Position numbers and translations under genes: made by a program | Notes under the pieces: generated by a model | Told to the model about the DNA's origin: nothing | What the model saw: only the letters and a program-made list of their open reading frames with translations | The model's database searches: none | Shown: positions 10,851 through 54,163 of the stretch, in pieces | Position numbering within the stretch: the first letter of the stretch is position 1 | How the letters are laid out: every line of letters begins with the position of its first letter | NCBI GenBank assembly: GCA_002104945.1 | Contig: MCFH01000004.1 | Coordinates: forward strand, 248,001-312,000 | Reading direction: 5' to 3' | DNA length: 64,000 nucleotides | Source of the DNA: Piromyces finnis finn | Taxonomy: Eukaryota; Fungi; Neocallimastigomycota

Positions 10851-10922
10851 GGTTCTATAGTGTAGTGGCTAGCACGTTGGACTCTGAATCCAACGACCCG
10901 AGTTCGAATCTCGGTAGAACCT
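10851..10922 (+). tRNA. tRNA-Gln, anticodon CTG
   Basis: Full cloverleaf: acceptor GGTTCTA/TAGAACC, D arm, anticodon stem TTGGA/TCCAA with loop CT-CTG-AA, T stem CCGAG/CTCGG with TTCGAAT. No intron. Confidence 0.97.
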
Positions 10923-16469: not shown

Positions 16470-18467
16470 ATGCTTAGTTTTCTTAGAGGTTGGAACCGTC
16501 CACGTACTTTAAAGGCTCGTAAGTCAATGTTAGATCTTCAAGCTAACAGTACTACTGCTACTTTAGCTAACATTGCTGCTAAGGCTTCTACTAATCTTCA
16601 TGAATACAAAATTTCTTCTCTTAGTGACTCTACCGCTTTATACTTAGGTATTGGTGGTGCTAACAATAAGAACATTGCTCAATTTAATATTTGTATTTCT
16701 GATGGTGTTAACCCAGTTCACTATCTTTTCCGTGAAATTGAATTCCCACAAAACCAAGACCTTTCAAACCCAGAAGTTCTCAAGCAACGTGGTGATAATA
16801 TTCAAAATGAAATTATTGAATGTATTGATGAATTCCAAAAGGCTAATGATATTAAGATTATTGGTGCCACTTTACTTAGACCATTATTAGATTCATGGGG
16901 TGTTACCCGTTTACCAGAAGAACTCTGGTCAAAGTTAGATATTGTTCCATTTGTTCTCGACAATGAAAAGGATGTTATTAACTACGACTTCGGACCAAAC
17001 TCTGATGTCCCAGTTGATGCTAATGGCAAAATTAACCTTGTTAATATTGATGATTACAAGGGTACTGTTTCTAAGGAAACTTGGGATGTTCTTATGAAGA
17101 TCACTGAACGTTTAAGAGATGAACAAGACTTAAAGATTGCCTTCTTCAATGCTACTCCACAAGGTGGTGGTGTCGCTTTAATGAGACATGCTGGTATTCG
17201 TTTATTCCGTCTTTTAGGTGTTAAGTGCCGTTGGTTTGTTCCATTCCCAGATAACGATGTCTTCCGTATCACCAAGAACAACCACAATATTTTACAAGGT
17301 GTTGCTGATCCAAACCTTCGTCTTACTGAAGATAACAAGAAGACTTACGAAGCCTGGATTAAGGCCAATGTTGAAAAGTATTGGTTAAACGATGTTTTCA
17401 GAGAATGCAATGTTATCTTCATTGATGATCCACAAATGGTTGGTCTTGTTCCATATATTAAGGAAGTTAACCCAGCCTGTAAGATTCTTTACCGTTCTCA
17501 CATTCAAATTCGTGCTGATTTAGCTAATACTCCAGGATCTCCACAAAATGGTGTCTGGTCTTACTTATGGTCTTTCATTCAACACTGTGATTTATTCATT
17601 AGTCACCCAGTTCTTTCTTTCATTCCAGATGAAGTTCCACTTGAAAAGACTGTTCTTATGCCAGCTGCTTCTGACCCAATCGATGGTTTAAACAAGGAAT
17701 TAAATGACAATGAAATGGATTACTACATTGGTATTTTCAATCGTATTTGTGCTGAACAAGGAACCAAGAACACTCTTGACCCAGAACGTCCAAACATTAT
17801 TCAAATTGCTCGTTTCGATCCAGCCAAGGGTATTCCAGATGTTATTGATTCCTATGCTATCTTACGTAAAAAGATGAATGATGCTGGTTATCCAGTTGAA
17901 AAGACTCCACAATTAGTTATTTGTGGTCATGGTGCTATTGATGACCCAGATGCTTCCATTATCTATGCTCAAGTTATGGATCAATTAAAGGATCCAAAGT
18001 ACAAGAATGTTGTTAACGACATCATTGTTGCTCGTCTTCCACCAAGTGACCAACTTTTAGATGCTGTTTTACGTCGTTCCTACCTTGCTTTACAATTATC
18101 TCACCGTGAAGGTTTCGAAGTTAAGGTTACTGAAGCTTTAGCTAAAGGTATTCCAGTTGTTGCTGCTCGTGCTGGTGGTATTCCATTACAAATTAAGGAT
18201 GGTAAGACTGGTTTCTTATGTGAAGTTGGCGATTGTGAAGCTGTTGCTCAACGTATGTTTGAACTCTTTGATAATCCAAAACTTCATGCTCGTATGAGTA
18301 AGGATTCTTCTCGTTTATGTACTGAAGAATTCTGGACTATTTTCAACTACATGCACTGGATGTTCATGGCTTCTGAAATTTATGAAAAGGGTGCTCTTGT
18401 TGGTAACCGTCGTTGGATTAAGGAATTCTGGTATGAAAAGTACAACTACACTCCAATTCAAGAATAA
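16470..18467 (+). CDS. GT4-family trehalose phosphorylase/synthase (fungal TreP/TSase, ccg-9-like), intronless, 665 aa
   Basis: Motifs [58 protein letters not shown] and STREGF-like [14 protein letters not shown]. Strong codon bias. Confidence 0.88.
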
Positions 18468-19070
18468 ATGAACTTATCTTTTTTTTTTTAAACTAAATAA
18501 ATTTTATTTATAAAAAATTTTTTATCTGTTTTTCAATTTTTTCCCATTTTTTTTTTAAATATATATAAAGAAAAAATGGAAAAAAAAGAAAATTCAAAAT
18601 CATTTTTAAAAGAACATATAAAATATTTTTATACATTACAAGTTATACAATCATTTTATCAATTTTTTTTTATTTTATATTAAAATCTGTTTAATTTTCA
18701 ACTATATTTAATATTTTTATTATATATTATATCCACTTATTCATTTAAATGTATATGTTATACGTACAATTATATATTATAAAATATGTATTATTTATAT
18801 TTAAATAAATAAAATAAAAATATATAAATATATAAATTAATTTTGTATATAAATGAAACTTTTTTATATCTTTTTTTTTTTTTTTTTTTAAAAAAAAAGA
18901 AAGTTATAATAGAAACCTATCAGGATTAATAAAAACCTTATTTTTTTTTTTTTTTGGTAATAGTAAATTCAAAAAAATTGGTATTTTTTAAATTCTAGAA
19001 AGATCCAACATTTTATTTAGCGGGAAAACCCATTCCAACTATTGATGGCTACACTTATTTTGATAAGAAT

Positions 19071-19173
19071 TTCATTTGTGCTTATTTAAACATATTTTTT
19101 TATTTTTATTTTATTTTTTAATTTTTATATTACATGTATTATAATTTTAATAAAGTTTAAAATATTTGATGCC

Positions 19174-19207
<34 letters not shown>
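19071..19207 (+). mobile_element. LINE copy A: distal 3' UTR plus poly(A), severely 5'-truncated
   Basis: Matches the last ~105 nt of the 3' UTR of copies B and C, followed by A31. Flanked by AAGAAT(TT) at 19065-19072 and 19206-19213. Confidence 0.8.
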
Positions 19208-19209
<2 letters not shown>

Positions 19210-19229
19210 ATTTGTCTCTTAAGCCAGTT

Positions 19230-19790
19230 TTAATGTGTATGATTATTCTAGTGTGTACAGTAAAATATTTAAATTCCTTCTTGGGGGAAGAAGTTTTAAC
19301 AATATTAATTACAATTCAAGGGAATGGAAAGAACTTTGTAAGCGTCAGATTCAATCTGATACTAACGAAGGAACACCATTCTTGACGGTAACCGCGGAAC
19401 TTCTAACCAAAATCATGCCTTTTGCTATTGGCCAGCAATGGACAATGTTCAAAAGGTTTGAAGCAACATCCAAGAGCGTCAATGCTGAAGAAACAGTAAG
19501 ACAGGCCAGGAGGGCCAGCGCAACCAATGGAGATCATAATTTTGTTCCATGACAAAATTTTGATCTTTGGCTCGGTGTCCCATTGGAAGTCAAATACAAT
19601 TATTATACTTTAGTATGATAGTGGCTTTCTTACTTTAATTAAAATTACTAGAATACATTATACCCAATTTTTATTCATTTGTGTTTATTTAAACATATTT
19701 TTTTTTATTTTTATTTTTATTTTTTAATTTTTTATTACATGTATTATAATTTTAATTAAATTAATAATAAAGTTTAAAATATTTGATGCC

Positions 19791-19821
<31 letters not shown>
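19230..19821 (+). mobile_element. LINE copy B: last ~105 codons of the ORF plus 3' UTR and poly(A), 5'-truncated
   Basis: ORF 19235-19552 is near-identical to the C-terminus of copy C. Tail A28. Perfect 13-bp TSD TCTTAAGCCAGTT at 19217-19229 and 19822-19834. Confidence 0.92.
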
Positions 19822-19826
<5 letters not shown>

Positions 19827-19884
19827 AGCCAGTTATTAAAGCTCTTAATAGGAAGGTTTTGAAAGGACTTTTCTCAATCAGTCA

Positions 19885-22800
19885 TTGATTACATCCACAA
19901 AAGATGTAATGAATTTAGGAAACAAGAATATCTTCATTGGATTAAAACAGGATGTGAGTATATGAAGAGTCATAATCCTAAGAAGGCCTGGAAATGGATC
20001 AAGAAAACTGCAAAAATTGGAAAAGATTCTTTCTTTATTGCTCAACCAATTAAAAATAAAAATGGAGAATTAGTTGTTGCTACGGAAGAACAACTAGATG
20101 TGTGGCATGATCATTTCGAAAATCTTGCATCAGATCCAAGTGGTGTAAGTCTTGATTTGGAGCATTGGTATGAAGAACCAACGAATAAACGTTTTTCACT
20201 TCCTATGCTTGATGAGTGGGATATCAACCAAGATATTAGTATTGATGAAGTCAAGTCAGCTATCCTCTCTACTCCAAATTATAAAGCATCAGGTCCGGAT
20301 GGTATTCCAATTGAATTTTACAAAGCATTAATTCCATCAAGTAATGATTCTAATAATGCTACAGATAATAATTCTTCTGGTAATACTACTTCAGATAATG
20401 ATGCTCATGGGTTAAATTTTATTCTTAAATTATTCAACCGTATTTGGGATGGAGACTTCCCCAACTCATGGAATGAATCCAGTATTGTTTCTATTCCTAA
20501 GAAGGGAGATTTGACAGATTGTTATAACTATCGAGGTATATCACTTATCAATAATGGTATTAAGTTGATTTCCAAAATTGTCACCACTAGAATCTCAGAA
20601 TATGGTTTAAAGAATAATTTCATTAGACCTGAACAATTTGGTTTTCGAAAAAAGGAAGAAAGTATTAGTCTTTTCATTTCAATCCAAGAAATATGCCGTA
20701 GACGTCAATTAGATAATAAAGAGACATATTTGGCCTTTTTAGATCTCAGGAAAGCATACGATTCAGTCCCAATCGGTAATATTCTCCATAAATTAGATTG
20801 TTTAGGAATCCGAGGTAAGAGTTTACAATTCATCAAAAATTTATATTTAACATCTAAGGCTAATGTCAAATTAGATGGACAATTCTCGAAATCTTTTGAT
20901 GTGAAGAAAGGAGTCCGTCAAGGATGCCCTCTTTCTCCTATTCTCTTTAATCTCTTTATTAATGATATATTTAGAGAGTGCGAAGATCTAGGAGTCAGTT
21001 TAGGTGACACTCGATGCTGTGGTGGACTTTTTGCAGATGATATAGTTATTTGTGCTCCAACAAGAGGATGCTTAAAAAAGATGCTTAGAAGAGTTAATGA
21101 ATGGGCACTGTATAATGAAATGGAATTTGGTATCCAGAAATGTTCAACGATGGTGATTCGTCCTGAATCAATAGAAAATCAGAACAAGAGAGATCCAACA
21201 TTTTACTTAGCAGGACAACCCATTCCAACTACTGATTGCTATACTTATCTTGGTGTTCCATTTGATAAGAATCTGTCCCTTAAACCAGTAATTAAAGCTC
21301 TTAATAACAAGGTTTTGAAAGGACTTTTCTCAGTCAGTAAATTCTTAAGAAATCCTAATATTCCTATTCCTTTCAAAAAACTAGTACTTAACTCACAAGT
21401 GATTAGCAGAGTTTCATACTTTGCACCATTACTTGGATCCAACAAAGCTAGGTCTAGGATTGCTCAGAAGCATGTTAACAAAGGAATACGATGGGTTGCC
21501 GGAGTTCATAAAGCTGTATCGTTTATATCTTTATACTCTATTTCAAAAGATTTGAATATTCCTCCATTGTCAGCCAAATGTGCGTTAGCTCAGGTTAGAT
21601 GTTTTAACAAATGGAAAAACTCAAATTGTATTATCTCACACCTTGTCAATTACATTCCTAAATTTAGAAAATACACGTGGTGCAAATCAAGTAGGACACT
21701 TGATAAAAAACTAAAGAAACATGGAGATGTTAAAGCAGTTAAAAACTTTTATTGGAAAGATCTCAAAGGGAATTCAATCAAAGCGCAATATTATGATGAT
21801 AATAAATTTATTGAAACTAAAGATTTTATTAAATTATGTTATGAGTACCCAGAGTTTGCCTATGGCTTCTACTGGCTCTTGAAAGCAAGAAGCGGATACA
21901 AGTTGGATGCTAGAGTTGCCAAAGCTGCTAAATTTGTTGATCCAGTTTGTCCTAACTACTGTCCATGTTGCAAGTGTGGAGATCAAAGTATTAAACATTG
22001 GTTATTAGATTGTCCAACATTTAGAGATATCCGTATTAAACATTATGATTCCATAGTCCAGCTATTAAATTTTTTCAGTCAACGTAATTCCAATAGTCCT
22101 ATCAATAATAATGAAATTGATAATATCAGTAGAGATAGTAATAATATTAATAGTAATAGTAACAATAGTAGTAATAACAATAGTAATAGTAACAATAGTA
22201 ATAGTAACAATAGTAATAATAACAATAATAGAAATAATAATATTAGTAATGATAGCAATAGTGAAGATAATAATTCTAATTTAGATAGTAATTTAGTTAA
22301 TGATAGTAATAGTTCTAATAATCCGGTGAATATTAATGTGTATGATTATTCTAGTGTGTGCAGTAAAATATTTAAATTCCTTCTTGGGGGAAGAAGTTTT
22401 AACAATATTAATTACAATTCAAGGGAATGGAAAGAACTTTGTAAGCGTCAGATTCAATCTGGTACTAATGAAGGAACACCATTCTTGACGGTAACCGCGG
22501 AACTTCTAACCAAAATCATGCCTTTTGCTATTGGCCAGCAATGGTCAATGTTCAAAAGGTTTGAAGCAACATCCAAGAGCGTCAATGCTGAAGAAACAGT
22601 AAGACAGGCCAGGAGGGCCAGCGCAACCAATGGAGATCATAATTTTGTTCCATGACAAAATTTTGATCTTTGGCTCGGTGTCCCATTGGAAGTCAAATAC
22701 AATTATTATATTTTAGTATAATAGTGGCTTTCTTACTTTAATTAAAATTACTAGAATACATTATACCCAATTTTTATTCATTTGTGTTTATTTAAACATA

Positions 22801-22893
22801 TTTTTTTTTTATTTTTATTTTAATTTTAATTTTTTTATTACATGTATTATAATTTTAATTAAATTAATAATAAAGTTTAAAATATTTGATGCC

Positions 22894-22954
<61 letters not shown>
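19885..22954 (+). mobile_element. LINE copy C: 5'-truncated, retaining RT and the C-terminal zinc motif
   Basis: Starts at the position equivalent to 24318 of copy D. Tail A58. 14-bp TSD TTCTCA(A/G)TCAGTCA at 19871-19884 and 22955-22968 with one mismatch. Confidence 0.93.
19962..22655 (+). CDS. Reverse transcriptase ORF of LINE copy C (no endonuclease domain), 897 aa
   Basis: KASGPDG, NYRGISL, QFGFR, AFLDLRKAYDSV, GVRQGCPLSPILF, LFADD, YLG, and CPCCKCG..H..LDC. Confidence 0.92.
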   Translation: MKSHNPKKAWKWIKKTAKIGKDSFFIAQPIKNKNGELVVATEEQLDVWHDHFENLASDPSGVSLDLEHWYEEPTNKRFSLPMLDEWDINQDISIDEVKSAILSTPNYKASGPDGIPIEFYKALIPSSNDSNNATDNNSSGNTTSDNDAHGLNFILKLFNRIWDGDFPNSWNESSIVSIPKKGDLTDCYNYRGISLINNGIKLISKIVTTRISEYGLKNNFIRPEQFGFRKKEESISLFISIQEICRRRQLDNKETYLAFLDLRKAYDSVPIGNILHKLDCLGIRGKSLQFIKNLYLTSKANVKLDGQFSKSFDVKKGVRQGCPLSPILFNLFINDIFRECEDLGVSLGDTRCCGGLFADDIVICAPTRGCLKKMLRRVNEWALYNEMEFGIQKCSTMVIRPESIENQNKRDPTFYLAGQPIPTTDCYTYLGVPFDKNLSLKPVIKALNNKVLKGLFSVSKFLRNPNIPIPFKKLVLNSQVISRVSYFAPLLGSNKARSRIAQKHVNKGIRWVAGVHKAVSFISLYSISKDLNIPPLSAKCALAQVRCFNKWKNSNCIISHLVNYIPKFRKYTWCKSSRTLDKKLKKHGDVKAVKNFYWKDLKGNSIKAQYYDDNKFIETKDFIKLCYEYPEFAYGFYWLLKARSGYKLDARVAKAAKFVDPVCPNYCPCCKCGDQSIKHWLLDCPTFRDIRIKHYDSIVQLLNFFSQRNSNSPINNNEIDNISRDSNNINSNSNNSSNNNSNSNNSNSNNSNNNNNRNNNISNDSNSEDNNSNLDSNLVNDSNSSNNPVNINVYDYSSVCSKIFKFLLGGRSFNNINYNSREWKELCKRQIQSGTNEGTPFLTVTAELLTKIMPFAIGQQWSMFKRFEATSKSVNAEETVRQARRASATNGDHNFVP

Positions 22955-22956
<2 letters not shown>

Positions 22957-25900
22957 CTCAGTCAGTCAATCAGTTCAACAATCTCATCAACAATCCGATC
23001 TTCAACAAGATCTTCAACAAGATCTTCAACAAGTTTCCCATCATGAAAATATTCCAGATCTACAGCAAACACAATTTCAATCTCAACATTCAACAATTAA
23101 TTCTAATAGTTCTATCAACTCTGATAACAGTTCAATAGTTGATAGTTCTTCAGTTTCACAGCCATCTAGTAATAGTTCTACTTATTCCTCTGATGCATCA
23201 TCCATTAATAACGATGACTTTAATAATAATAATAATAGCAACGATTCTTCCTCATTCAACAAGCCTGATAACTTTTCTTTTTGTCTTAGTTGGAACACCA
23301 ATGGGTGGAATCACGAAAAGAGAGATAGTATTAGCTATTTCACAGCTATTTTCAAACCATTATTTTTATGTTTCCAAGAAACTGGTAATGGTTCTGGATC
23401 GAATACAGATTATCCTTGTCGTGTTACTTTGCGGAACTATAGACACTTTTTCAAGAAAGCTGACGAATCAGTTCCGGGAATGAGAGGTTTATATTTAGGT
23501 TTTCACAATTCGTGTCAAGCCTCACTCGAAAACTTCTCTGGAAAGTATATTATTTCTATTTATACTTTTAGTCTCTGGAATAGATTCAAATGCTCGATTG
23601 GAAATGTTTATATGCCTCATAGTCATCACAACATCTATGTTGATCATGCAAAGTTAGAAGTTCGCTTGTGGTTACAAACTCATTCATCCCATCCATCGAT
23701 TCTTGTTGGTGATTTTAATATGTCTAAAGTAAAATTATCCAACTGGTTATCAACTAATGGATTAGGAGATTGGGAAATTCTTCCGCTTAGAGGGTCTACT
23801 ATCTCTTGGACTCGAGGTGATCAATCTTCCGACATTGACCATGCTCTTATCAATTCGAAGATGAAAGATCTTATTCACTCAGGATCATTTATAAATAATT
23901 TTTATCCTGTATCAGACCATAAGCCACTTCTTATTAATGGTAAAATTATTCCTATGGATGATTTTTCTAATGACTTTAATGTTCCTAAGAAAATTCTGAA
24001 ATGGAATAGATTAAAATGTATTGAGGAAAAGGAATCTATTCTCAGTCATAATAAATTCCAAATTCTTTCAGCAAAATTCAACGATCCTAATGTTTCTACA
24101 GATGAACTTTCCAAAGAGTTTACTTCAACTGCTTTTTCAATTGCAGACGAGCTCAGTATTACCTCAGCTAATAATGTTATAAAGTCTTCATTTCATATTT
24201 CACAACAAATTTTTAATCTTCAAAAAATCAAAATGAAGTTGTATAAGAGATTTAAAAAAGAAAGAATTTATGATATAGATGAATTTATTAAAAGAATTAA
24301 AATCTACCGTAAGCTCATTGATTACATCCACAAAAGATGTAATGAATTTAGGAAACAAGAATATCTTCATTGGATTAAAACAGGATGTGAGTATATGAAG
24401 AGTCATAATCCTAAGAAGGCCTGGAAATGGATCAAGAAAACTGCAAAAATTGGAAAAGATTCTTTCTTTATTGCTCAACCAATTAAAAATAAAAATGGAG
24501 AATTAGTTGTTGCTACAGAAGAACAACTTGAAGTGTGGCATGATCATTTCGAAAACCTTGCATCAGATCCAAGTGGTGTAAGTCTTGATTTGGAGCATTG
24601 GTATGAAGAACCAACGAATAAACGTTTTTCACTTCCTATGCTTGATGAGTGGGATATCAACCAAGATATTAGTATTGATGAAGTCAAGTCAGCTATCCTC
24701 TCTACTCCAAATTATAAAGCATCAGGTCCGGATGGTATTCCAATTGAATTTTACAAAGCATTAATTCCATCAAGTAATGATTCTAATAATGCTACAGATA
24801 ATAATTCTTCCGGTAATACCACTTCAGATAATGATGCTCATGGGTTAAATTTTATTCTTAAATTATTCAACCGTATTTGGGATGGAGACTTCCCCAACTC
24901 ATGGAATGAATCCAGTATTGTTTCTATTCCTAAGAAGGGAGATTTGACAGATTGTTATAACTATCGAGGTATATCACTTATCAATAATGGCATTAAGTTG
25001 ATTTCCAAAATTATCACCACTAGAATCTCAGAATATGGTCTAAAGAATAATTTCATTAGACCTGAACAATTTGGTTTTCGAAAAAAGGAAGAAAGTATTA
25101 GTCTTTTCATTTCAATCCAAGAAATATGCCGTAGACGTCAATTAGATAATAAAGAGACATATTTGGCCTTTTTAGATCTCAGGAAAGCATACGATTCAGT
25201 CCCAATCGGTAATATTCTCCATAAATTAGATTGTTTAGGAATCCGAGGTAAGAGTTTACAATTCATCAAAAATTTATATTTAACATCTAAGGCTAATGTC
25301 AAATTAGATGGACAATTCTCGAAATCTTTTGATGTGAAGAAAGGAGTCCGTCAAGGATGCCCTCTTTCTCCTATTCTCTTTAATCTCTTTATTAATGATA
25401 TTTTTAAAGAGTGCGAATATCTCGAAGTCAGTTTAGGTGACACTCGATGCTGTGGTGGACTTTTTGCAGATGATATAGTTATTTGTGCTCCAACAAGAGG
25501 ATGCTTAAAAAAGATGCTAAGAAGAGTTAATGAATGGGCCTTGTATAATGAAATGGAATTTGGTATCCAGAAATGTTCAACGATGGTGATTCGTCCTGAA
25601 TCAATAGAAAATCAGAACAAGAGAGATCCAACATTTTACTTAGCAGGACAACCCATTCCAACTACTGATTGTTATACTTATCTTGGTGTTCCATTTGATA
25701 AGAATCTGTCCCTTAAACCAGTAATTAAAGCTCTTAATAACAAGGTTTTGAAAGGACTTTTCTCAGTCAGTAAATTCTTAAGAAATCCTAATATTCCTAT
25801 TCCCTTCAAAAAACTAGTACTTAACTCACAAGTGATTAGCAGAGTTTCATACTTTGCACCATTACTTGGATCCAACAAAGCTAGGTCTAGAATTGCTCAG

Positions 25901-27064
25901 AAGCATGTTAACAAAGGAATACGATGGGTTGCCGGAGTTCATAAAGCTGTATCATTTATATCTCTATACTCTATTTCAAAAGATTTGAACATTCCTCCAT
26001 TGTCAGCCAAATGCGCATTATCTCAGGTTAGATGTTTTAACAAATGGAAAAACTCAAATTGTATTATCTCACACCTTGTCAATTACATTCCTAAATTTAG
26101 AAAATACACGTGGTGCAAATCAAGTAGGACACTTGATAAAAAACTAAAGAAACATGGAGATGTTAAAGCAGTTAAAAACTTTTATTGGAAAGATCTCAAA
26201 GGAAATTCAATCAAAGCGCAATATTATGATGATAATAAATTTATTGAAACTAAAGATTTTATTAAATTATGTTATGAGTACCCAGAGTTTGCCTATGGCT
26301 TCTACTGGCTATTGAAAGCAAGAAGCGGATACAAGTTGGATGCTAGAGTTGCCAAAGCTGCTAAATTTGTTGATCCAGTTTGTCCTAACTACTGTCCATG
26401 TTGCAAGTGTGGAGATCAAAGTATTAAACATTGGTTATTAGATTGTCCAACATTTAGAGATATCCGTATTAAACATTATGATTCCATAGTCCAGCTACTA
26501 AATTTTTTCAGTCAACGTAATTCCAATAGTCCTATCAATAATAATGAAAATGTTAATATCAGCAGAGATAGCAATAACAGTAATAGTAATAGTAATAATA
26601 TTAATAATAACAATAGTAATAATAACAATAGTAGTAATAGAAATAATAATATTAGTAATGATAGCAATAGTGATGATAATAATTCTAATTTAGATAGTAA
26701 TTTAGTTGATGATAGTAATAGTTCTAATAATCCGGTGAATATTAATGTGTATGATTATTCTAGTGTGTGCAGTAAAATATTTAAATTCCTTCTTGGGGGA
26801 AGAAGTTTTAACAATATTAATTACAATTCAAGGGAATGGAAAGAACTTTGTAAGCGTCAGATTCAATCTGGTACTAATGAAGGAACACCATTCTTGACGG
26901 TAACCGCGGAACTTCTAACCAAAATCATGCCTTTTGCTATTGGCCAGCAATGGTCAATGTTCAAAAGGTTTGAAGCAACATCCAAGAGCGTCAATGCTGA
27001 AGAAACAGTAAGACAGGCCAGGAGGGCCAGCGCAACCAATGGAGATCATAATTTTGATCCATGA
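22886..27064 (+). CDS. APE endonuclease-reverse transcriptase polyprotein of LINE copy D; the first ~27 codons come from copy C's tail and TSD
   Basis: APE motifs SWNTNG (~23288), FQET, GNVY, VGDFN, IDH and SDHKP (~23912). RT LFADD at ~25463. CxxC..H..C at ~26392. No stops or frameshifts. Confidence 0.93.
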
Positions 27065-27335
27065 CAAAATTTTGATCTTTGGCTCGGTGTTCCACTGAAA
27101 GTCAAATACAATTATTATATTTTAGTATAATAGTGGCTTTCTTACTTTAATTAAAATGACTTGAATACATTATACACAGTTTTTATTCATTTTTATTTAT
27201 TTAAACCTATTTTTTTTATAATTTTTATTTTTTTATTTTTATTTTTAATTTTATTTCTTATAACATGTATTCTTATTTTAATTAAATTAATAATAAGGTT
27301 TAAAAATATTTGATGCCGTTAAAAAAAAAAAAAAA
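22969..27335 (+). mobile_element. LINE copy D: longest copy (APE endonuclease + RT + zinc motif), probably lacking its native 5' end; 3' UTR more diverged
   Basis: Intact ORF to 27064, 3' UTR and A15, followed by host sequence GATCCATAC. Confidence 0.93.
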
Positions 27336-27968
27336 GATCCATACTATCCTATCAGATATTATTTTTTTTTATTTTATTTCATTTAGTCATATAGAGATAT
27401 ATCTACACAATTCAATTTTATGAGTTATTTGAACTTGTTTAATTTTAATATATATTTTTCAAAGTATTTTTTTCCATAAAAAAAAAATAACAATATTCAA
27501 TATTAGCAAAATTTCTATGGATGAATAAATGAATGTTATAAATAAAATTCAAAATTTATAAAATTTATGATATTTTATTAAATACATTTACACTTTTTAT
27601 ATATGTTTATATTATTAACAAATCTAAAATAATAAAAGTAATGATATAAAATGTGAAATTTTTTTTTTTTTAATTTTAAAAAAGAAATAATTAAAAATGA
27701 TAATGTATATGCACAAAGATTATTATTAGTTTAACTTTAATGATTAATGAAATAAATGAGTATAAATTTATTATTATATTATATGATACTTATTTTTTCT
27801 ACAAAATATATGTTGGAATATGAAATAATGAATGAGTTGACTTTTTTTTTTTTACTTTTATATTTATTAATAGTATATATATATATTTATTTCATCAAAA
27901 TTTCATGTGTTATAAATATATATATATATATATTTAGATTTTTTTTTTTTTTTTTTTTTTTGAAATAT

Positions 27969-43018: not shown

Positions 43019-46000
43019 TTAATATAATGCTTTTTTGGATCTATTAAAGGATTTTTTTATATTTCCTTGATTGAATTGTTCAAATAATTCTGGAGGTTGA
43101 CCAGGTTTAGATGAATTTGAAATATTACTATATTTTCCTAAAACATCATCTATTTCATGCTTTGCTGAAGGTTCATTACAATATAAACTAATTAATTTTT
43201 GAAGAGTAGTATTCTTTCGTATAACTTGACTCTTCTTTTTACTATTTCTGATACGTGACTTTCTTTGTTGATCACCTTCATTTTCTTCTTCAAGATTTTG
43301 ATACAATTCATTATTTTCCTTTTTTTTGTTTTCTTGAATTTGTATGGGTGAAGACGTGCGTATTATCTTATTACTTAAATACTCTACTTCATCTTGATCA
43401 TCAGATATTTCAATAGTACAATCAGACGAACAAAAAACTATATCAATGTCACTGTCATATATAATCTCATCAAGATCACTATTAATTCCATTGTTTTGGC
43501 TTATATCCATCACTTTATTTTTCCGTGAATCGTCAAGACTTTCAATATTATTTTCTATAGTTTCAGATGACTCAGAAGATATTGAGTGTAATTTTTCAAC
43601 ATGTGATACTATTCTTTTACTTTTATCTTCTCCTTCCTTATTCTCAAAGGTATACTCGTCAAATGGAAGGACGGATGGAATACTAGCTATTCTTTCAATT
43701 TTTTCATCATCAAATTCTGTATCTGACCCGCTTTCAGATTCAGATGTATATAAACTTTCATCAGAACATTTTTCATTTTCAGCATCATAAGGTCTCTCAA
43801 AAGCTATTTCTATATCATCATCAATTTCAGATTCTTCTTCTGAATCAGATTCGCATTCCGATTCACTTTCAGATTCTGAATCATTTATCAATTGAAATAC
43901 TTTTTTGGGTTGATCCTTATGTCTTAATTGTTCTTTTTCATATTCCTTTTTTAAGCTCTCAGAATTATATTCATTTACATTACAAATTAATATATCATTC
44001 TTCTCATTAGTTTCAACTTCAAAACAAATTTCAAATTCGCTATCCTCTTCCATTTCCTTAGCTTCCTTTGTAAAATAGATTTCTAAATTATCACATTCTT
44101 TACAATCTTTTTCAATTTCATCATCTGATTCTAAGTCTGACTCCGATTCCGATTCTGATTTTGATTCTAAGTCTGATTCCGATTCTGATTCTAATTCTGA
44201 TTCTAATTCTGACTCTGACTCTTCTCTACTAAAGCAAATTTCAATACCTTCATCTTCCTCGTTTTCACTTGCATTTCTTTCAAATATAATTTCAATCTCA
44301 TCATCAATGTCATCTTCTTCACTTTCATCTTCTTCACTTTCATATTCTTCACTTTCATCATCACTTTCTTCATTATCATCTTCACTTTCTTCATATTCAA
44401 ATTCAGATTTTTCCTCTTCAAATTCTTTATCACCATCAACTTTTTCAAAGCAAATTTCAATATCACTATCTCCAACGTTTTCTTCAATATAATTTTCTTG
44501 TTCTTCTTCGCTATTGTCATTTTCACCATATTCAATAATATTTTTAATCGGACTGTAATCTTTACTCAAAATATAAACTTCTTCCTCAATCTCTTCTTCT
44601 TCAATTTCTTCTTCATAAATAGAATCCTGGTTAATAAACAAAGTTTTTGGGTTTTCACTATTTACATATTCCACAACAACAATTTCTTCAATAAAACTAT
44701 TTTTAGTTGATTCCTCATTCAATATATTATTTTCTTCATTAAATGATATATCTTTCTCTATTCTATCCTTACAACAACAATCTTCATTCAATATTTTCTT
44801 ATCGCTAAAGAGAGATTCATCTTCTGTATCTTGAATGAAAAAACTAATTCCATCTTTTTCATCAAAATTTTCAATAATATCAAGAAGACATTGATTATCA
44901 GCAGAAAAATTAGAAATGAATGAATCAGAGTCATCCTTTAAAATAATCTCTTCTTTATTATTATCATAATCATCTAATAATAAATGATCCGTTGAGGTTT
45001 CTAATTCAATATCAAAATTAAAATGAACATGGCTATTACTCTTTTCCTTAAATATAAAAGAATCATAATCGGCATTATGCTTACAATTACAACAATGACA
45101 ATGAGTGTTTTGGTTCTCTAACCCATCACAAATACTTGAACTATTATCAGTAAATGAAGAATTTCTTGAATTTAAATCAAGTAATTGATTTTCATATTCT
45201 CCATCATCTTCATTATTACTACAAAAACCACTGTCGTTAAGAGCTTCATAACTATTATATTCCTTTTTTAACAAAATACTCTTCTTAAATGATTCATAAG
45301 TCAGACTTTCCATGTAAGTTCTAAATTCTTCATCATCTTCAATGGTACTTATTACATCTCTATCTTGTGAATGATACCAATCTAAAATTGCTGATGCATC
45401 AATAATATTTAAGTTATATAATCTATCAATTACATTTATAAATAAATGTTTTAAAGAATTAGTAGCCTTAAAATGGTTGTAAATAAGATTTAATAGATGA
45501 AGTTTATCCTTTTTGGATGGACCGACATATTCTTGGAATAAAGCTACATATTTTCTAATAAATTCAAGTACACATATCTTAGCCTTTTTTTGTTTTTTCT
45601 TTTCAATGAGATCACATATTACATCAACAAAGGCAGAAAGAACCTCTTTTCTCTTTGTTTCACATTTCTTCACAATCTTATCCAATTCAATAGAAACATA
45701 AACAGCATCCAAATCATCAACAATCATTTGATTTAAGATCAAAGGAGCAACATCACAAAATTTGGACTTTCCTTCTTTTACTTCTAATATGAAGTCATCT
45801 ATTCCTCTTTTATCCAAATCACTTAGTAATTTCTTTGCTTCTTCTTCAATTCGACGTTGTTCTTCTTGTCTTTTGAAAATGTTTGATTCCATTGATGATT
45901 TAAATCCATCTTCAGAATAATTTCTTGAGTAACTATCATCCTCATCACTGCTATAATCATTATCATTTTCATGACTTTGCATGTCAATTTGACGTTTCAA

Positions 46001-46663
46001 TGATTTATTTTCATCTTCCAATTTTCCACATTTTAAAAAACACTCTTCATAAGATTTTTCTAATTTTTTATATGACTCCTTTAAGCAATTTTCCTTAATT
46101 TCATATGCATTCTTTTCATTTTCTAATTGCTTACTAATTTCATCACTTTTTTTATTACAAAATCTAAGTTTTTCTACCAATAATTTATTATATGTTTCAA
46201 CTTCAATGAGCCTTTTTTTATAATATTTCAATTCCTTTTTGTTAGCTATTGTAAGAGATATTGGGTTTAAACGAATGATTGAATACTTCAAAAATTTTTT
46301 AATTCCCTTAATGCCACATTGACAATATAATGATTTAAATGAATGGTAATGACTATGATGATGGCCTGTAATATAAGAATTATGCTTACTAGCATTTAAT
46401 GATAATGAAGATTTTTCATTTGAAGTTTCAACTGCTGCTAAACACAATGCCTCATATATTGGACATGATTTTTGAATTTTATTTCCATAGTCTTCACTTA
46501 TATTTATTCTTTCATTTTGATTATTGTTATATTTAAGTATTTTCTTTAATAATAATATTATTACTATAGTTGGAAATACTATGGTTAATAAAGTTTCATT
46601 TTCTTCTTTGTTAACAGTTTCATTAACTTTTTCAATTGCTTGATTAACTTCTATTCCCTCCAT
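43019..46663 (-). CDS. 1214-aa intronless protein: N-terminal hydrophobic segment, coiled coil, W2 (eIF5/eIF2B-epsilon/eIF4G C-terminal-like) domain, very long acidic tail
   Basis: Single long ORF. LLTIVFPTIVIILLL lies near the N-terminus. W2-like ...FIRKYVALFQEYV....KLHLLNLI...LFINVIDRLYNLNIIDASAILDWY (~45360-45570). The C-terminal half is D/E/S-rich. Confidence 0.75.
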   Translation of the reverse strand: MEGIEVNQAIEKVNETVNKEENETLLTIVFPTIVIILLLKKILKYNNNQNERINISEDYGNKIQKSCPIYEALCLAAVETSNEKSSLSLNASKHNSYITGHHHSHYHSFKSLYCQCGIKGIKKFLKYSIIRLNPISLTIANKKELKYYKKRLIEVETYNKLLVEKLRFCNKKSDEISKQLENEKNAYEIKENCLKESYKKLEKSYEECFLKCGKLEDENKSLKRQIDMQSHENDNDYSSDEDDSYSRNYSEDGFKSSMESNIFKRQEEQRRIEEEAKKLLSDLDKRGIDDFILEVKEGKSKFCDVAPLILNQMIVDDLDAVYVSIELDKIVKKCETKRKEVLSAFVDVICDLIEKKKQKKAKICVLEFIRKYVALFQEYVGPSKKDKLHLLNLIYNHFKATNSLKHLFINVIDRLYNLNIIDASAILDWYHSQDRDVISTIEDDEEFRTYMESLTYESFKKSILLKKEYNSYEALNDSGFCSNNEDDGEYENQLLDLNSRNSSFTDNSSSICDGLENQNTHCHCCNCKHNADYDSFIFKEKSNSHVHFNFDIELETSTDHLLLDDYDNNKEEIILKDDSDSFISNFSADNQCLLDIIENFDEKDGISFFIQDTEDESLFSDKKILNEDCCCKDRIEKDISFNEENNILNEESTKNSFIEEIVVVEYVNSENPKTLFINQDSIYEEEIEEEEIEEEVYILSKDYSPIKNIIEYGENDNSEEEQENYIEENVGDSDIEICFEKVDGDKEFEEEKSEFEYEESEDDNEESDDESEEYESEEDESEEDDIDDEIEIIFERNASENEEDEGIEICFSREESESELESELESESESDLESKSESESESDLESDDEIEKDCKECDNLEIYFTKEAKEMEEDSEFEICFEVETNEKNDILICNVNEYNSESLKKEYEKEQLRHKDQPKKVFQLINDSESESESECESDSEEESEIDDDIEIAFERPYDAENEKCSDESLYTSESESGSDTEFDDEKIERIASIPSVLPFDEYTFENKEGEDKSKRIVSHVEKLHSISSESSETIENNIESLDDSRKNKVMDISQNNGINSDLDEIIYDSDIDIVFCSSDCTIEISDDQDEVEYLSNKIIRTSSPIQIQENKKKENNELYQNLEEENEGDQQRKSRIRNSKKKSQVIRKNTTLQKLISLYCNEPSAKHEIDDVLGKYSNISNSSKPGQPPELFEQFNQGNIKKSFNRSKKALY

Positions 46664-51366: not shown

Positions 51367-54163
51367 ATGGATTTTAGTTTTAGAAATTTAAAGAAATTTG
51401 TTTCAGATAATTTCTTACTTGAAGAAAATGAAAATTCACAAGAATCAAACTCATATTACCAAAATAATACTGATAATACTTTGAAAGAAAAGGATATAGT
51501 TAAAGTATGTATAATATATAATAATATATAATTTTTTATAATTTAATTTAAAAAAGTTAAATTATTAATAATAACAACAACCATATTAATAATGATAACA
51601 ACAACAACAACAACAACAATAATATATATATTTAAATTTTTTATGGCAAAAGAAAAATTTATTAAGAAATACATCAAAACTTTCATATGATATATTATTA
51701 CATATTTTTGAAATAATAAATTCAAGACCAGACCAAAAAGATGATTTAATAAATTGTATTCAAGTATGTAAACTTTGGGCATATGTGGTATCAGGAATAA
51801 TTTGGAGGGATATAACACTTAAAAACAAAACATTAAATATATCATGGATATTAGGTTTATCAAGAAGGAGAGAAATAACACAAAATTCTTTGGAATCTGA
51901 TAAATATATCCAAACAGGAAGGTTTACATCTGCTTTTGGAATTCGTATTCCTTTATTCCAAATAAATGAAATAATACCTTCAATTGTAAATTATTCAAAA
52001 AATGGAAATTCCTTTCAAAAAAATGTACCCTTGTTATCTTATACAGGACTGATAAGAACTTTAGTATTATCATCTTCATATAATGATTTTTTTAAAGAGA
52101 ATAAACTAATTTCTCCTGCATTTGCTATATATAGAGATTATGATTCTTCTGTAAATAGAAAAAATAATAAATATAGTTGTAAAAATAATACTGCTTTAAA
52201 AGAAAATATAAATATGTATTTAAACAGTAGTCCTGATGCGAGAAGGAAAATGGAATACGAATTTATAAAAATGAAAACGGAATATGAATATGATATAAGT
52301 CAGGAAGAAGCTGAAGTTAGAGTGATAAGAGAATGTTGTTCCACAATACGATCTGTTATACTTCAGGGTGAATTTATATCGCCTAATTTAGTGAAGACAC
52401 TTATTAAATACATAAAAAATATAAAATCATTAAATATTGTAGATTGTGTTGTAGAAAATAATGGCTTTATTCACAAATTATCAAATGAAATAAAAAATTC
52501 TTTGGAAGAATTAAATGCTTCCTTAAAAAATTATGGAAGTTATATGAGATACCCAATTAATCCAAATGAACTTTTATATGAAATTAATAATTTTAAAAAA
52601 ATAAAAAGGCTACATTTGAGCAACTACTTGGAACACGATGCTTTCACAAATGTTATGAAGAAATTGAAATTTGATTTAGAAAGCGGTTCCACTAATAACA
52701 GTCCCTTAAGCCCAATCAGCAGTGGATCCGAAACAAGTCGTTTTGGTGTGGGAGATAGAAATACTATGAGAGCAAATTTTTTAAGATATCAAGCTCTTCA
52801 TTCAACCGCTCATGCCGAATCTCAACTATTTAGTAATACCAATGCTATGAATATAACTTTAAATGGTGGTAGTAGTAACATATTGAGTGAAAAGGATAAC
52901 CTATTAATAGAAGAAAATTATTTACCGATCATTCAAGAATTAGAACTTATTTGTTATCGAAGAATAGAACATGAAAAAAACAATTTATTTTTATTAAGTA
53001 ATTTATTAAGTGGCAAAACTTTATTATATTTAACAATTAAATCATTACAAGGTGGTGTTATTTGTAATTCACTTGCAAATTTTTTAATTAGGGCTACCAA
53101 TTTAAAATATTTATTCTTTTATATTGCTAATCCAGAAATTACAGATGATATTGAAGTACAAGGTGAATTGCCTGAGAATCGTCGTCTTTCTTCAGTATTT
53201 GATCGTTCTTTATTTTTAAATAGACGACTTTCAATTGCATCATCCATTGATAATATACCAATTTCACCTATATCATCTTCTCCATCGTTTAATCGATCTG
53301 TTATCTCTGAACTTGAGATTATTGGCTCTTACGCTTCTCTTTGCTTAAATAAATTAGAGCTAGAATGGGAAGAATTTGGAGAAGATTTTGATTCCCTTGA
53401 AAAATGCATTATGGATATTAGTATGAGAGTGGAGAGAAGAAAACAGAGACTTCAGAATATGGATCAACCCTCCCAAAAACACCTATTATCATTCAATAAG
53501 GTAAAACTTACTCCTCCAACTGGTATTAGAACCTTAGTATTCCATAGCTTGACAGTGAATAATAGTGAACGTTTATTTAAATTATTAAATTTGATTCCTA
53601 CACTCAATTCTCTTACTATCTTACCTAAATATGATGATACGGATCATAAAGTATTATCTGAAAGTGTGAATCAATTATTAAATTCGTTTACATATTCTTT
53701 TGTAAATGAAACTTCTAAATACTTTGAACAGTGGGTTGACACTAATGATGTTGGAAAGCGCCATATAGAGCAAGGTCTTCGTCAAGGACGTGATCGATCC
53801 ATTAATTATACCAATTTAAAAACTATTTTTTTAGGTGTTTCATTTATACAACCTGAAGATTTAAAAACAATTGCTCAATCATGTCCAAATCTAAAAGAGC
53901 TTTGCTTATTTAGGGCCGGCTCTCTTAATCAATCTGATATTTATTTCAATGAATGGGAGAAATTTAAGAAAAAAGTTAGAGTATTACTGAATCAGGATAG
54001 GATGGGTTGTTGTGATATTTTAGAATCGGCATCATCAACGTCTAATATTCAAGAGAATGATGATAAATATTATTTAAATTTCTATAGAATTAATAATCCT
54101 TCATTACATATTTACCTTAATTCAGAAAAAATATTTAAATGGATAAGGGAAAGTAAACTTTAA
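51367..54163 (+). CDS. F-box protein with a degenerate LRR/RNI-like C-terminus; exons 51367-51504 and 51653-54163 (882 aa)
   Basis: Phase-0 intron GTATGT..AAG. The frame upstream of the listed ORF reads LSYDILLHIFEII...DLINCIQVCKLWAYVVSGIIWRDI (F-box). LRR-like segments include LKTIFL and CPNLKELCL. Confidence 0.8.

Follow-up and report, generated by a model that had tools for sequence, protein, structure and literature searches.

Some long interspersed nuclear elements (LINEs) are site-specific, with R1 and R2 found in 28S ribosomal DNA, Tx1L in Tx1D and Utopia in U2 small nuclear RNA genes, each at the same nucleotide position in every copy of its target. The position-specific LINEs TRE5-A and TRE3 of Dictyostelium integrate at transfer RNA (tRNA) genes, at a distance from this landmark and in a fixed orientation. 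Other LINEs insert into copies of themselves. Published accounts describe self-nesting in tandem orientation for Cnl1, a LINE of fungi, and for Zepp, a LINE of algae (PMC9942834, PMC8226300), and clusters of nested elements are described for Zepp and Zepp-like LINEs of green algae (PMC3446292). Here we describe a LINE nest from the anaerobic gut fungus Piromyces finnis finn, a member of the Neocallimastigomycota, for which no literature specific to LINEs was found. The nest is encoded in a window of 64,000 nucleotides (assembly GCA_002104945.1, contig MCFH01000004.1, positions 248,001 to 312,000 of the forward strand), and all positions given below are those of this window unless another source is named. 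It consists of an old LINE copy that took up newer, same-sense copies of its own family, and it is a further example of the published self-nesting behaviour. The first-pass annotation of the window had taken a safe-haven or self-limiting mechanism of this kind to be undescribed for fungal LINEs; in view of the reports on Cnl1 and Zepp, this claim of novelty is wrong.

Self-BLAST and direct reading of the sequence revealed that the nest is made up of five pieces, all from a single LINE family and in the same orientation, here called H, A, B, C and D. All five copies were on the + strand and all were 5′-truncated, and they were mutually diverged (79–98% identity). The 3′ ends of the pieces read ...TTTGATGCCGTT(A)n. 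Four ends of the form GATGCCGTT(A)n were found, on copies A, B, C and D, with tails of ~29, 28, 58 and 15 A respectively; these copies were 135 bp, 592 bp, 3.07 kb and 4.37 kb in length, and the corresponding target-site duplications (TSDs) were 6, 13, 14 and 8 bp, the last of these being an outer duplication that is discussed with copy D. The host copy H was present as four pieces. The first of these (19000–19070) was the 5′ end of the old element and encoded part of its reverse transcriptase (RT), with 88–89% nucleotide identity to 21187–21252 and 25620–25685; it included the left copy of the outer duplication, AAGATCCA (19000–19007), and the left TSD of copy A, AAGAAT (19065–19070). Copy A (19071–19205) contained only 3′ untranslated region (UTR) and tail, and had 87% identity to the 3′ UTR of copy C. 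AAGAAT recurred at 19206, where it opened the second piece of H (19206–19229), and was followed by TTGTC and then by the left TSD of copy B, TCTTAAGCCAGTT, at 19217. Copy B (19230–19821) was a 3′ end made up of the C-terminal part of the coding region, the 3′ UTR and the tail, and showed 98.1% identity to the 3′ end of copy C (22333–22924). The TSD of B was exact (13/13) and its right copy, at 19822, began the third piece of H (19822–19884), in which it was followed by an RT-coding stretch (91.7% identity to 21279–21338) and by the left TSD of copy C, TTCTCA(A/G)TCAGTCA, at 19871. Copy C (19885–22954) had an intact open frame of 897 amino acids starting at 19962, and 96.7% identity to copy D between 24315 and 27335. 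The right TSD of C at 22955, TTCTCAGTCAGTCA, which matched the left one at 13 of 14 positions, made up the whole of the last piece of H (22955–22968).

Joining the H pieces with one copy of each duplication (19000–19070, 19212–19229 and 19835–19884) gave 139 bp of uninterrupted open frame, DPTFYLAGKPIPTIDGYTYFDKNLSLKPVIKALNRKVLKGLFSIS, which showed 88.5% identity to the corresponding region of D (25623–25774) with 7 synonymous versus 5 non-synonymous differences. The insertion sites of A, B and C were thus flanked by duplicated H sequence, placing newer copies inside an older copy of the same family. Counted from the front of H, the landings were at H+65 (A), H+76 (B) and H+125 (C), with the junction to D at H+139. 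An in-frame deletion of 12 bp in H, at 19059–19060, removed LGVP from the conserved motif YLGVPFD; it was 5 bp upstream of the duplication of copy A. This analysis confirms, down to single bases, what the first-pass annotation had seen. It had read the locus as a nest rather than as a head-to-tail array, and A, B and C each do carry a tail and an H-derived TSD at coordinates that we reproduced; removal of the inserts does rebuild a continuous RT-coding segment; and its reading of a true nest of same-family, same-sense insertions by target-primed reverse transcription (TPRT) is supported. The 5′ microhomologies that it had listed, TT for A and TCA for C, are present, the three first-strand nick sites (GAT^AAG, GTC^TCT and CTT^TTC) are different bonds with no common motif, as it had noted, and copy D directly abuts the last piece of H. 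Its count of four insertions within ~75 bp held in part: three landings with TSDs span ~72 bp, whereas D is represented by a junction only.

Copy D (22969–27335) had an intact frame of 1364 codons. It had no TSD of its own, as its tail was followed by GATCCATACTATCC (GATCCA...) and not by the rest of H. The AAGATCCA found at the 5′ junction of H recurred at the end of the tail of D (27334–27341), so that the two copies bracket the whole complex from H to D; the two leading A's of the right copy are also the last A's of the A15 run of D. In the left copy, AGATCCA is at the same time element sequence, which gives an unusually long 5′ microhomology of 7 nucleotides. With no duplication made by D, and with the partner of the duplication at the 5′ end of H directly behind the D tail, only three landings are proven by duplications. 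The position of AAGATCCA at the front of H and behind the tail of D indicates that the outer duplication came from one event, the 5′ end of which is H and the 3′ end of which is the tail now on D. Additionally, D had no start codon and no ATG near its start, and it did not have the N-terminal domain that is conserved in its relatives, so D is also 5′-truncated.

The 3′ 1.6 kb of H itself has presumably been lost. One possible route is an insertion of D into H, with later recombination between their 3′ parts, which have the same orientation; the other is an integration of D that was accompanied by a target deletion of 1.6 kb. In an alignment of C with D, the final ~365 bases of the coding region contained 2 differences, compared to ~22 in the 280-bp 3′ UTR, and the 3′ UTR of D (27055–27335) was ~8–9% different from those of B and C. 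Judged from the alignment, this jump in divergence may mark a crossover with the lost 3′ end of H; alternatively, it may result from fast evolution of the UTR between master lineages. The frame of D was also open backwards through the poly(A) of C, read as a run of lysines, and through the 14-bp duplication (FSVS). Due to this, an open reading frame finder reports a 'gene' of 1392 amino acids (22886–27064) that starts in the tail of C. A fusion of this kind, between a lysine run and the RT region, was present in none of the relatives compared.

Analysis of the protein encoded by D revealed an endonuclease/exonuclease/phosphatase domain (PF03372, 31.5 bits against a cut-off of 24.5) on 23240–24010, in which the motifs QET, GDFN and SDH were visible. 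This apurinic/apyrimidinic endonuclease (APE)-like domain (~23285–23920) was N-terminal to the RT domain (~24926–25693), which matched PF00078 (RVT_1) with E = 5e-35 over amino acids 653–908; the assignment of the family to the APE type in the first-pass annotation was therefore correct. Between C and D, 23 synonymous differences stood against 6 non-synonymous ones in 732 codons, which indicates two distinct, selected and active master lineages, and separate, recent insertion events. The C-terminal part of both encoded an Asn/Ser-rich stretch of low complexity, at 22104–22272 in C and 26540–26659 in D, the alignment of which contained 24 gap columns; relatives had similar Asn/Ser-rich stretches of other lengths.

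A protein search, in a collection that does not contain the LINE frames of this genome, showed that the closest proteins to D were encoded by unnamed LINEs of gut fungi or metagenomes, on contigs of 3–6 kb and with no more than 63% identity. The RT of a Batrachochytrium element shared 38% identity with the D protein. The full-length relatives (P0002–P0006) had in common, within residues 1 to ~120, an N-terminal domain of ~110 amino acids (M..Y.K.K.YI.RGSRCYGIP...) which included the start codon. This domain had no Pfam match and was lacking in all five copies of the window. One full-length relative (L013, 1009–2049) had a leader of ~1 kb, and its 3′ end read ...CTTTGCTGCCTTT(A)n. Among the contigs of the relatives P0015, P0009 and P0004, those that yielded DNA contained single elements only and no nests. 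A scan of metagenomes for further copies of the family with the tail motif ATTTGATGCCGTTAAAAAAAA returned five unrelated contigs with chance matches of 27 nucleotides only.

The nest is encoded in a very AT-rich region (13–35% GC; intergenic DNA 85% AT), between a trehalose-phosphorylase-like gene (16470–18467) and a C2H2 zinc-finger gene. The front of H is 532 bp behind the trehalose-phosphorylase-like gene, in ordinary intergenic DNA, and no LINE had landed in the spacers of 0.5–0.6 kb on either side of the nest. Ordinary genes are present throughout the window, which is gene-dense (PKC-like kinase, GH45, RGS, class-C GPCR and glycosyltransferase), and with such genes on both sides the nest appears to lie in a chromosome arm rather than in a subtelomere or centromere. 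Outside the nest, self-BLAST found no other LINE DNA in the 64 kb, and tblastn with a panel of eight LINE proteins found no other LINE-like coding sequence. There was no tRNA gene or other gene transcribed by RNA polymerase III (Pol III) near the nest, the nearest being tRNA-Gln at 10851. Two further open frames of the window, at 43019–46663 (−) and 51785–54163 (+), encoded 1214 and 792 amino acids and had no Pfam match at E ≤ 0.001.

The trehalose-phosphorylase-like protein had 92% identity to that of Neocallimastix lanati. The orthologous locus was compared in two N. lanati-type assemblies (GCA_016946835.1 and GCA_050613775.1), which were 99.7% identical to each other. Behind the orthologous gene and on the same strand was an old, degenerate LINE, R, with its ATG at 13201 of L008. 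The proteins of R and D shared only 37% identity, which shows R to be an independent insertion. A second LINE, N, was present in one assembly only (L007, 13137–18076; absent at L008, 13125–13136). N was full-length (4.94 kb), with an intact frame of 1366 codons, an A37 tail and a perfect 12-bp TSD, TTTTATTTTATT, and it had 65% nucleotide identity to R. It was inserted in the same sense as R, 65 bp before the ATG of R and ~75–105 bp inside its apparent front. N is a young LINE whose insertion site is at the front of an older resident, within the leader and not within the RT gene. Together N and R made up the only LINE cluster in these 22 kb of N. lanati, and a T32 tract was located 74 bp upstream of the landing of N. 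An alignment of the upstream flanks of the nest and of the N. lanati locus showed AT-rich background only, with no shared element or motif. A resemblance of 16 nucleotides behind the dT tracts of the two flanks was at chance level in the window.

The clustering of landings in the nest is far beyond chance. By our own arithmetic, which assumes that H once ran to its own tail over ~1.7 kb, the probability that chance would place three hits within the first 139 bp of H is about (139/1700)^3 = 5e-4. On balance, we lean towards the explanation that successive TPRT events of an active APE-type family were stacked in sense within a zone that covers ~150 bp from the upstream edge of a resident copy, with the site chosen by position and not by a dedicated sequence pad. 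The steps can be followed in the sequence: the 5′-truncated H landed in intergenic DNA, with the 8-bp duplication AAGATCCA and the 7-nucleotide microhomology at its 5′ end; next came the insertions of A, B and C, which are oriented like H and lie 65, 76 and 125 bp from its upstream junction, each with its own TSD; and D joined at H+139. The nicks, duplications, truncations and microhomologies can be read directly from the locus. Within the landing zone the nicks would be loosely chosen, and we infer that the incoming ribonucleoprotein (RNP) may be tethered to a mark of the start of the resident LINE, for example chromatin or an RNA:DNA hybrid. The position of N in N. lanati, ~75–105 bp inside a resident front and in the same sense, supports a positional zone.

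A number of points weigh against this explanation. There are only three to four landings at this locus and one in the relative, and a fixed distance from the upstream flank fits the data equally well. The wording 'just behind the previous poly(A) tail' fits B (11 bp) and C (49 bp); it fails for N in N. lanati, as there is no tail within 350 bp. The order of insertion of A, B, C and D could not be read from divergence, tails or TSDs, because the differences between the copies reflect distinct master lineages, and we know of no tethering factor. A wider form of the idea is that LINEs of anaerobic gut fungi target by a ruler rather than by sequence, in one orientation and across families and genera (this genome and N. 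lanati), using a zone of ~150 bp immediately within the upstream edge of any LINE already present or, equivalently, a position 40–180 bp behind a long dT tract. We put this forward tentatively, as a possibility with the chances rather against it.

The first-pass annotation had preferred a different account, in which a narrow stretch just past the RT core of the family's own kind is recognised, whether through its sequence, through RNA homology or through structure, and receives new copies in sense. The region in question corresponds to amino acids 886–934 of D, beginning in the C-terminal ~25 residues of the Pfam RT match and ending just past it. The account is favoured by three landings with TSDs and a further junction that lie within 72 bp of this region, all in sense. 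H is truncated, and its front edge is in the RT gene by chance, so that a target just past the RT core is confounded at this locus with one in the ~150 bp that follow the upstream junction of a resident copy. The 64 kb contain two further copies of the region that act as internal controls, in C (21190–21341) and in D (25623–25774), 2 kb and 6 kb away; both are intact and uninterrupted, so that one of three copies was hit. A recognised sequence is also at odds with the nick sites and their lack of a shared motif, and a recognised structure with the fold of the region, which was not unusual compared to shuffled sequences (z = −0.47 as DNA and +0.05 as RNA). A guide based on RNA homology would be expected to act along the whole resident copy and not just along 139 bp. 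The evidence comes from a single locus, and the newcomer in N. lanati is in the leader. A dedicated landing pad past the RT core is not supported by these data, and we consider this account of the nest quite improbable.

Locus-based and selective explanations were weighed against the same observations. A feature of the intergenic region itself could attract LINEs with or without a resident, repeated hits at a fixed distance then building the nest; it might be the end of the upstream gene, which has the same orientation, or a nucleosome-free poly(dT) tract at 18942–18957. This would agree with H having landed in non-LINE DNA and with the orthologous region of N. lanati, where the only cluster in 22 kb is likewise co-oriented with the gene and has the T32 tract upstream. 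However, the flanks of the two species have no alignable sequence or motif in common and long dA:dT tracts are everywhere in this AT-rich intergenic DNA, so we regard a hotspot of this kind as unlikely. If insertion was instead near-random, and only hits in dead transposon DNA escaped selection in a compact genome, the gene-dense neighbourhood and the location of A, B and C in the dead DNA of H would be accounted for. Survival of this kind predicts both orientations and a spread over all resident DNA and the AT-rich spacers, whereas four of four insertions are in sense, all are within 139 bp and the spacers are empty; we give it little credence. Repeats are hard to assemble, and template jumps of the RT can yield head-to-tail joins, which would make the nest an assembly artefact, a concatemer or a product of chance. 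Against this, every unit ends in a separate tail and comes with exactly duplicated RT sequence of the host copy, removal of the units restores the open frame, the copies differ from each other, and the locus sits in a contig of 1.48 Mb. Template jumps do not give collinear duplications of 13–14 bp, and an explanation of this type is extremely improbable.

Through self-nesting, the insertions of an active LINE are kept within its own dead copies, in a genome that is compact and dense in genes, and repeat islands that break synteny are built up. If the landing zone in resident copies is indeed set by position, gut fungi would be a natural system in which to study how an APE-type LINE is guided when its nuclease is not sequence-specific, as their young copies have intact frames and their assemblies differ in the presence of insertions. 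If LINEs of these fungi did target by a ruler, this would represent a chromatin- or RNP-tethered mode of targeting that the reports on Cnl1 and Zepp do not set out.

Cnl1 of Cryptococcus neoformans/deneoformans is, like the LINE of the present nest, a fungal APE-type element that nests in itself. Its arrays are subtelomeric, whereas the present nest is between ordinary genes, and no front-edge rule for Cnl1 is given in the available text; the likeness between the two is one of behaviour. Zepp, an L1 LINE of GC-rich green algae, forms one cluster per chromosome, probably at the centromere, compared to the 8-kb stack in a gene-rich region found here. With the site-specific R1/R2, Tx1L and Utopia the nest has in common repeated landing in one repeated target and in a fixed orientation. 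It differs from the R2 and Tx1L kind in that three different bonds without a motif were cut and the other copies of the RT region were left empty, so it does not classify as site-specific. The present nest has no Pol III gene nearby; even so, TRE5-A and TRE3 of Dictyostelium provide the analogy for a LINE that is targeted by distance.

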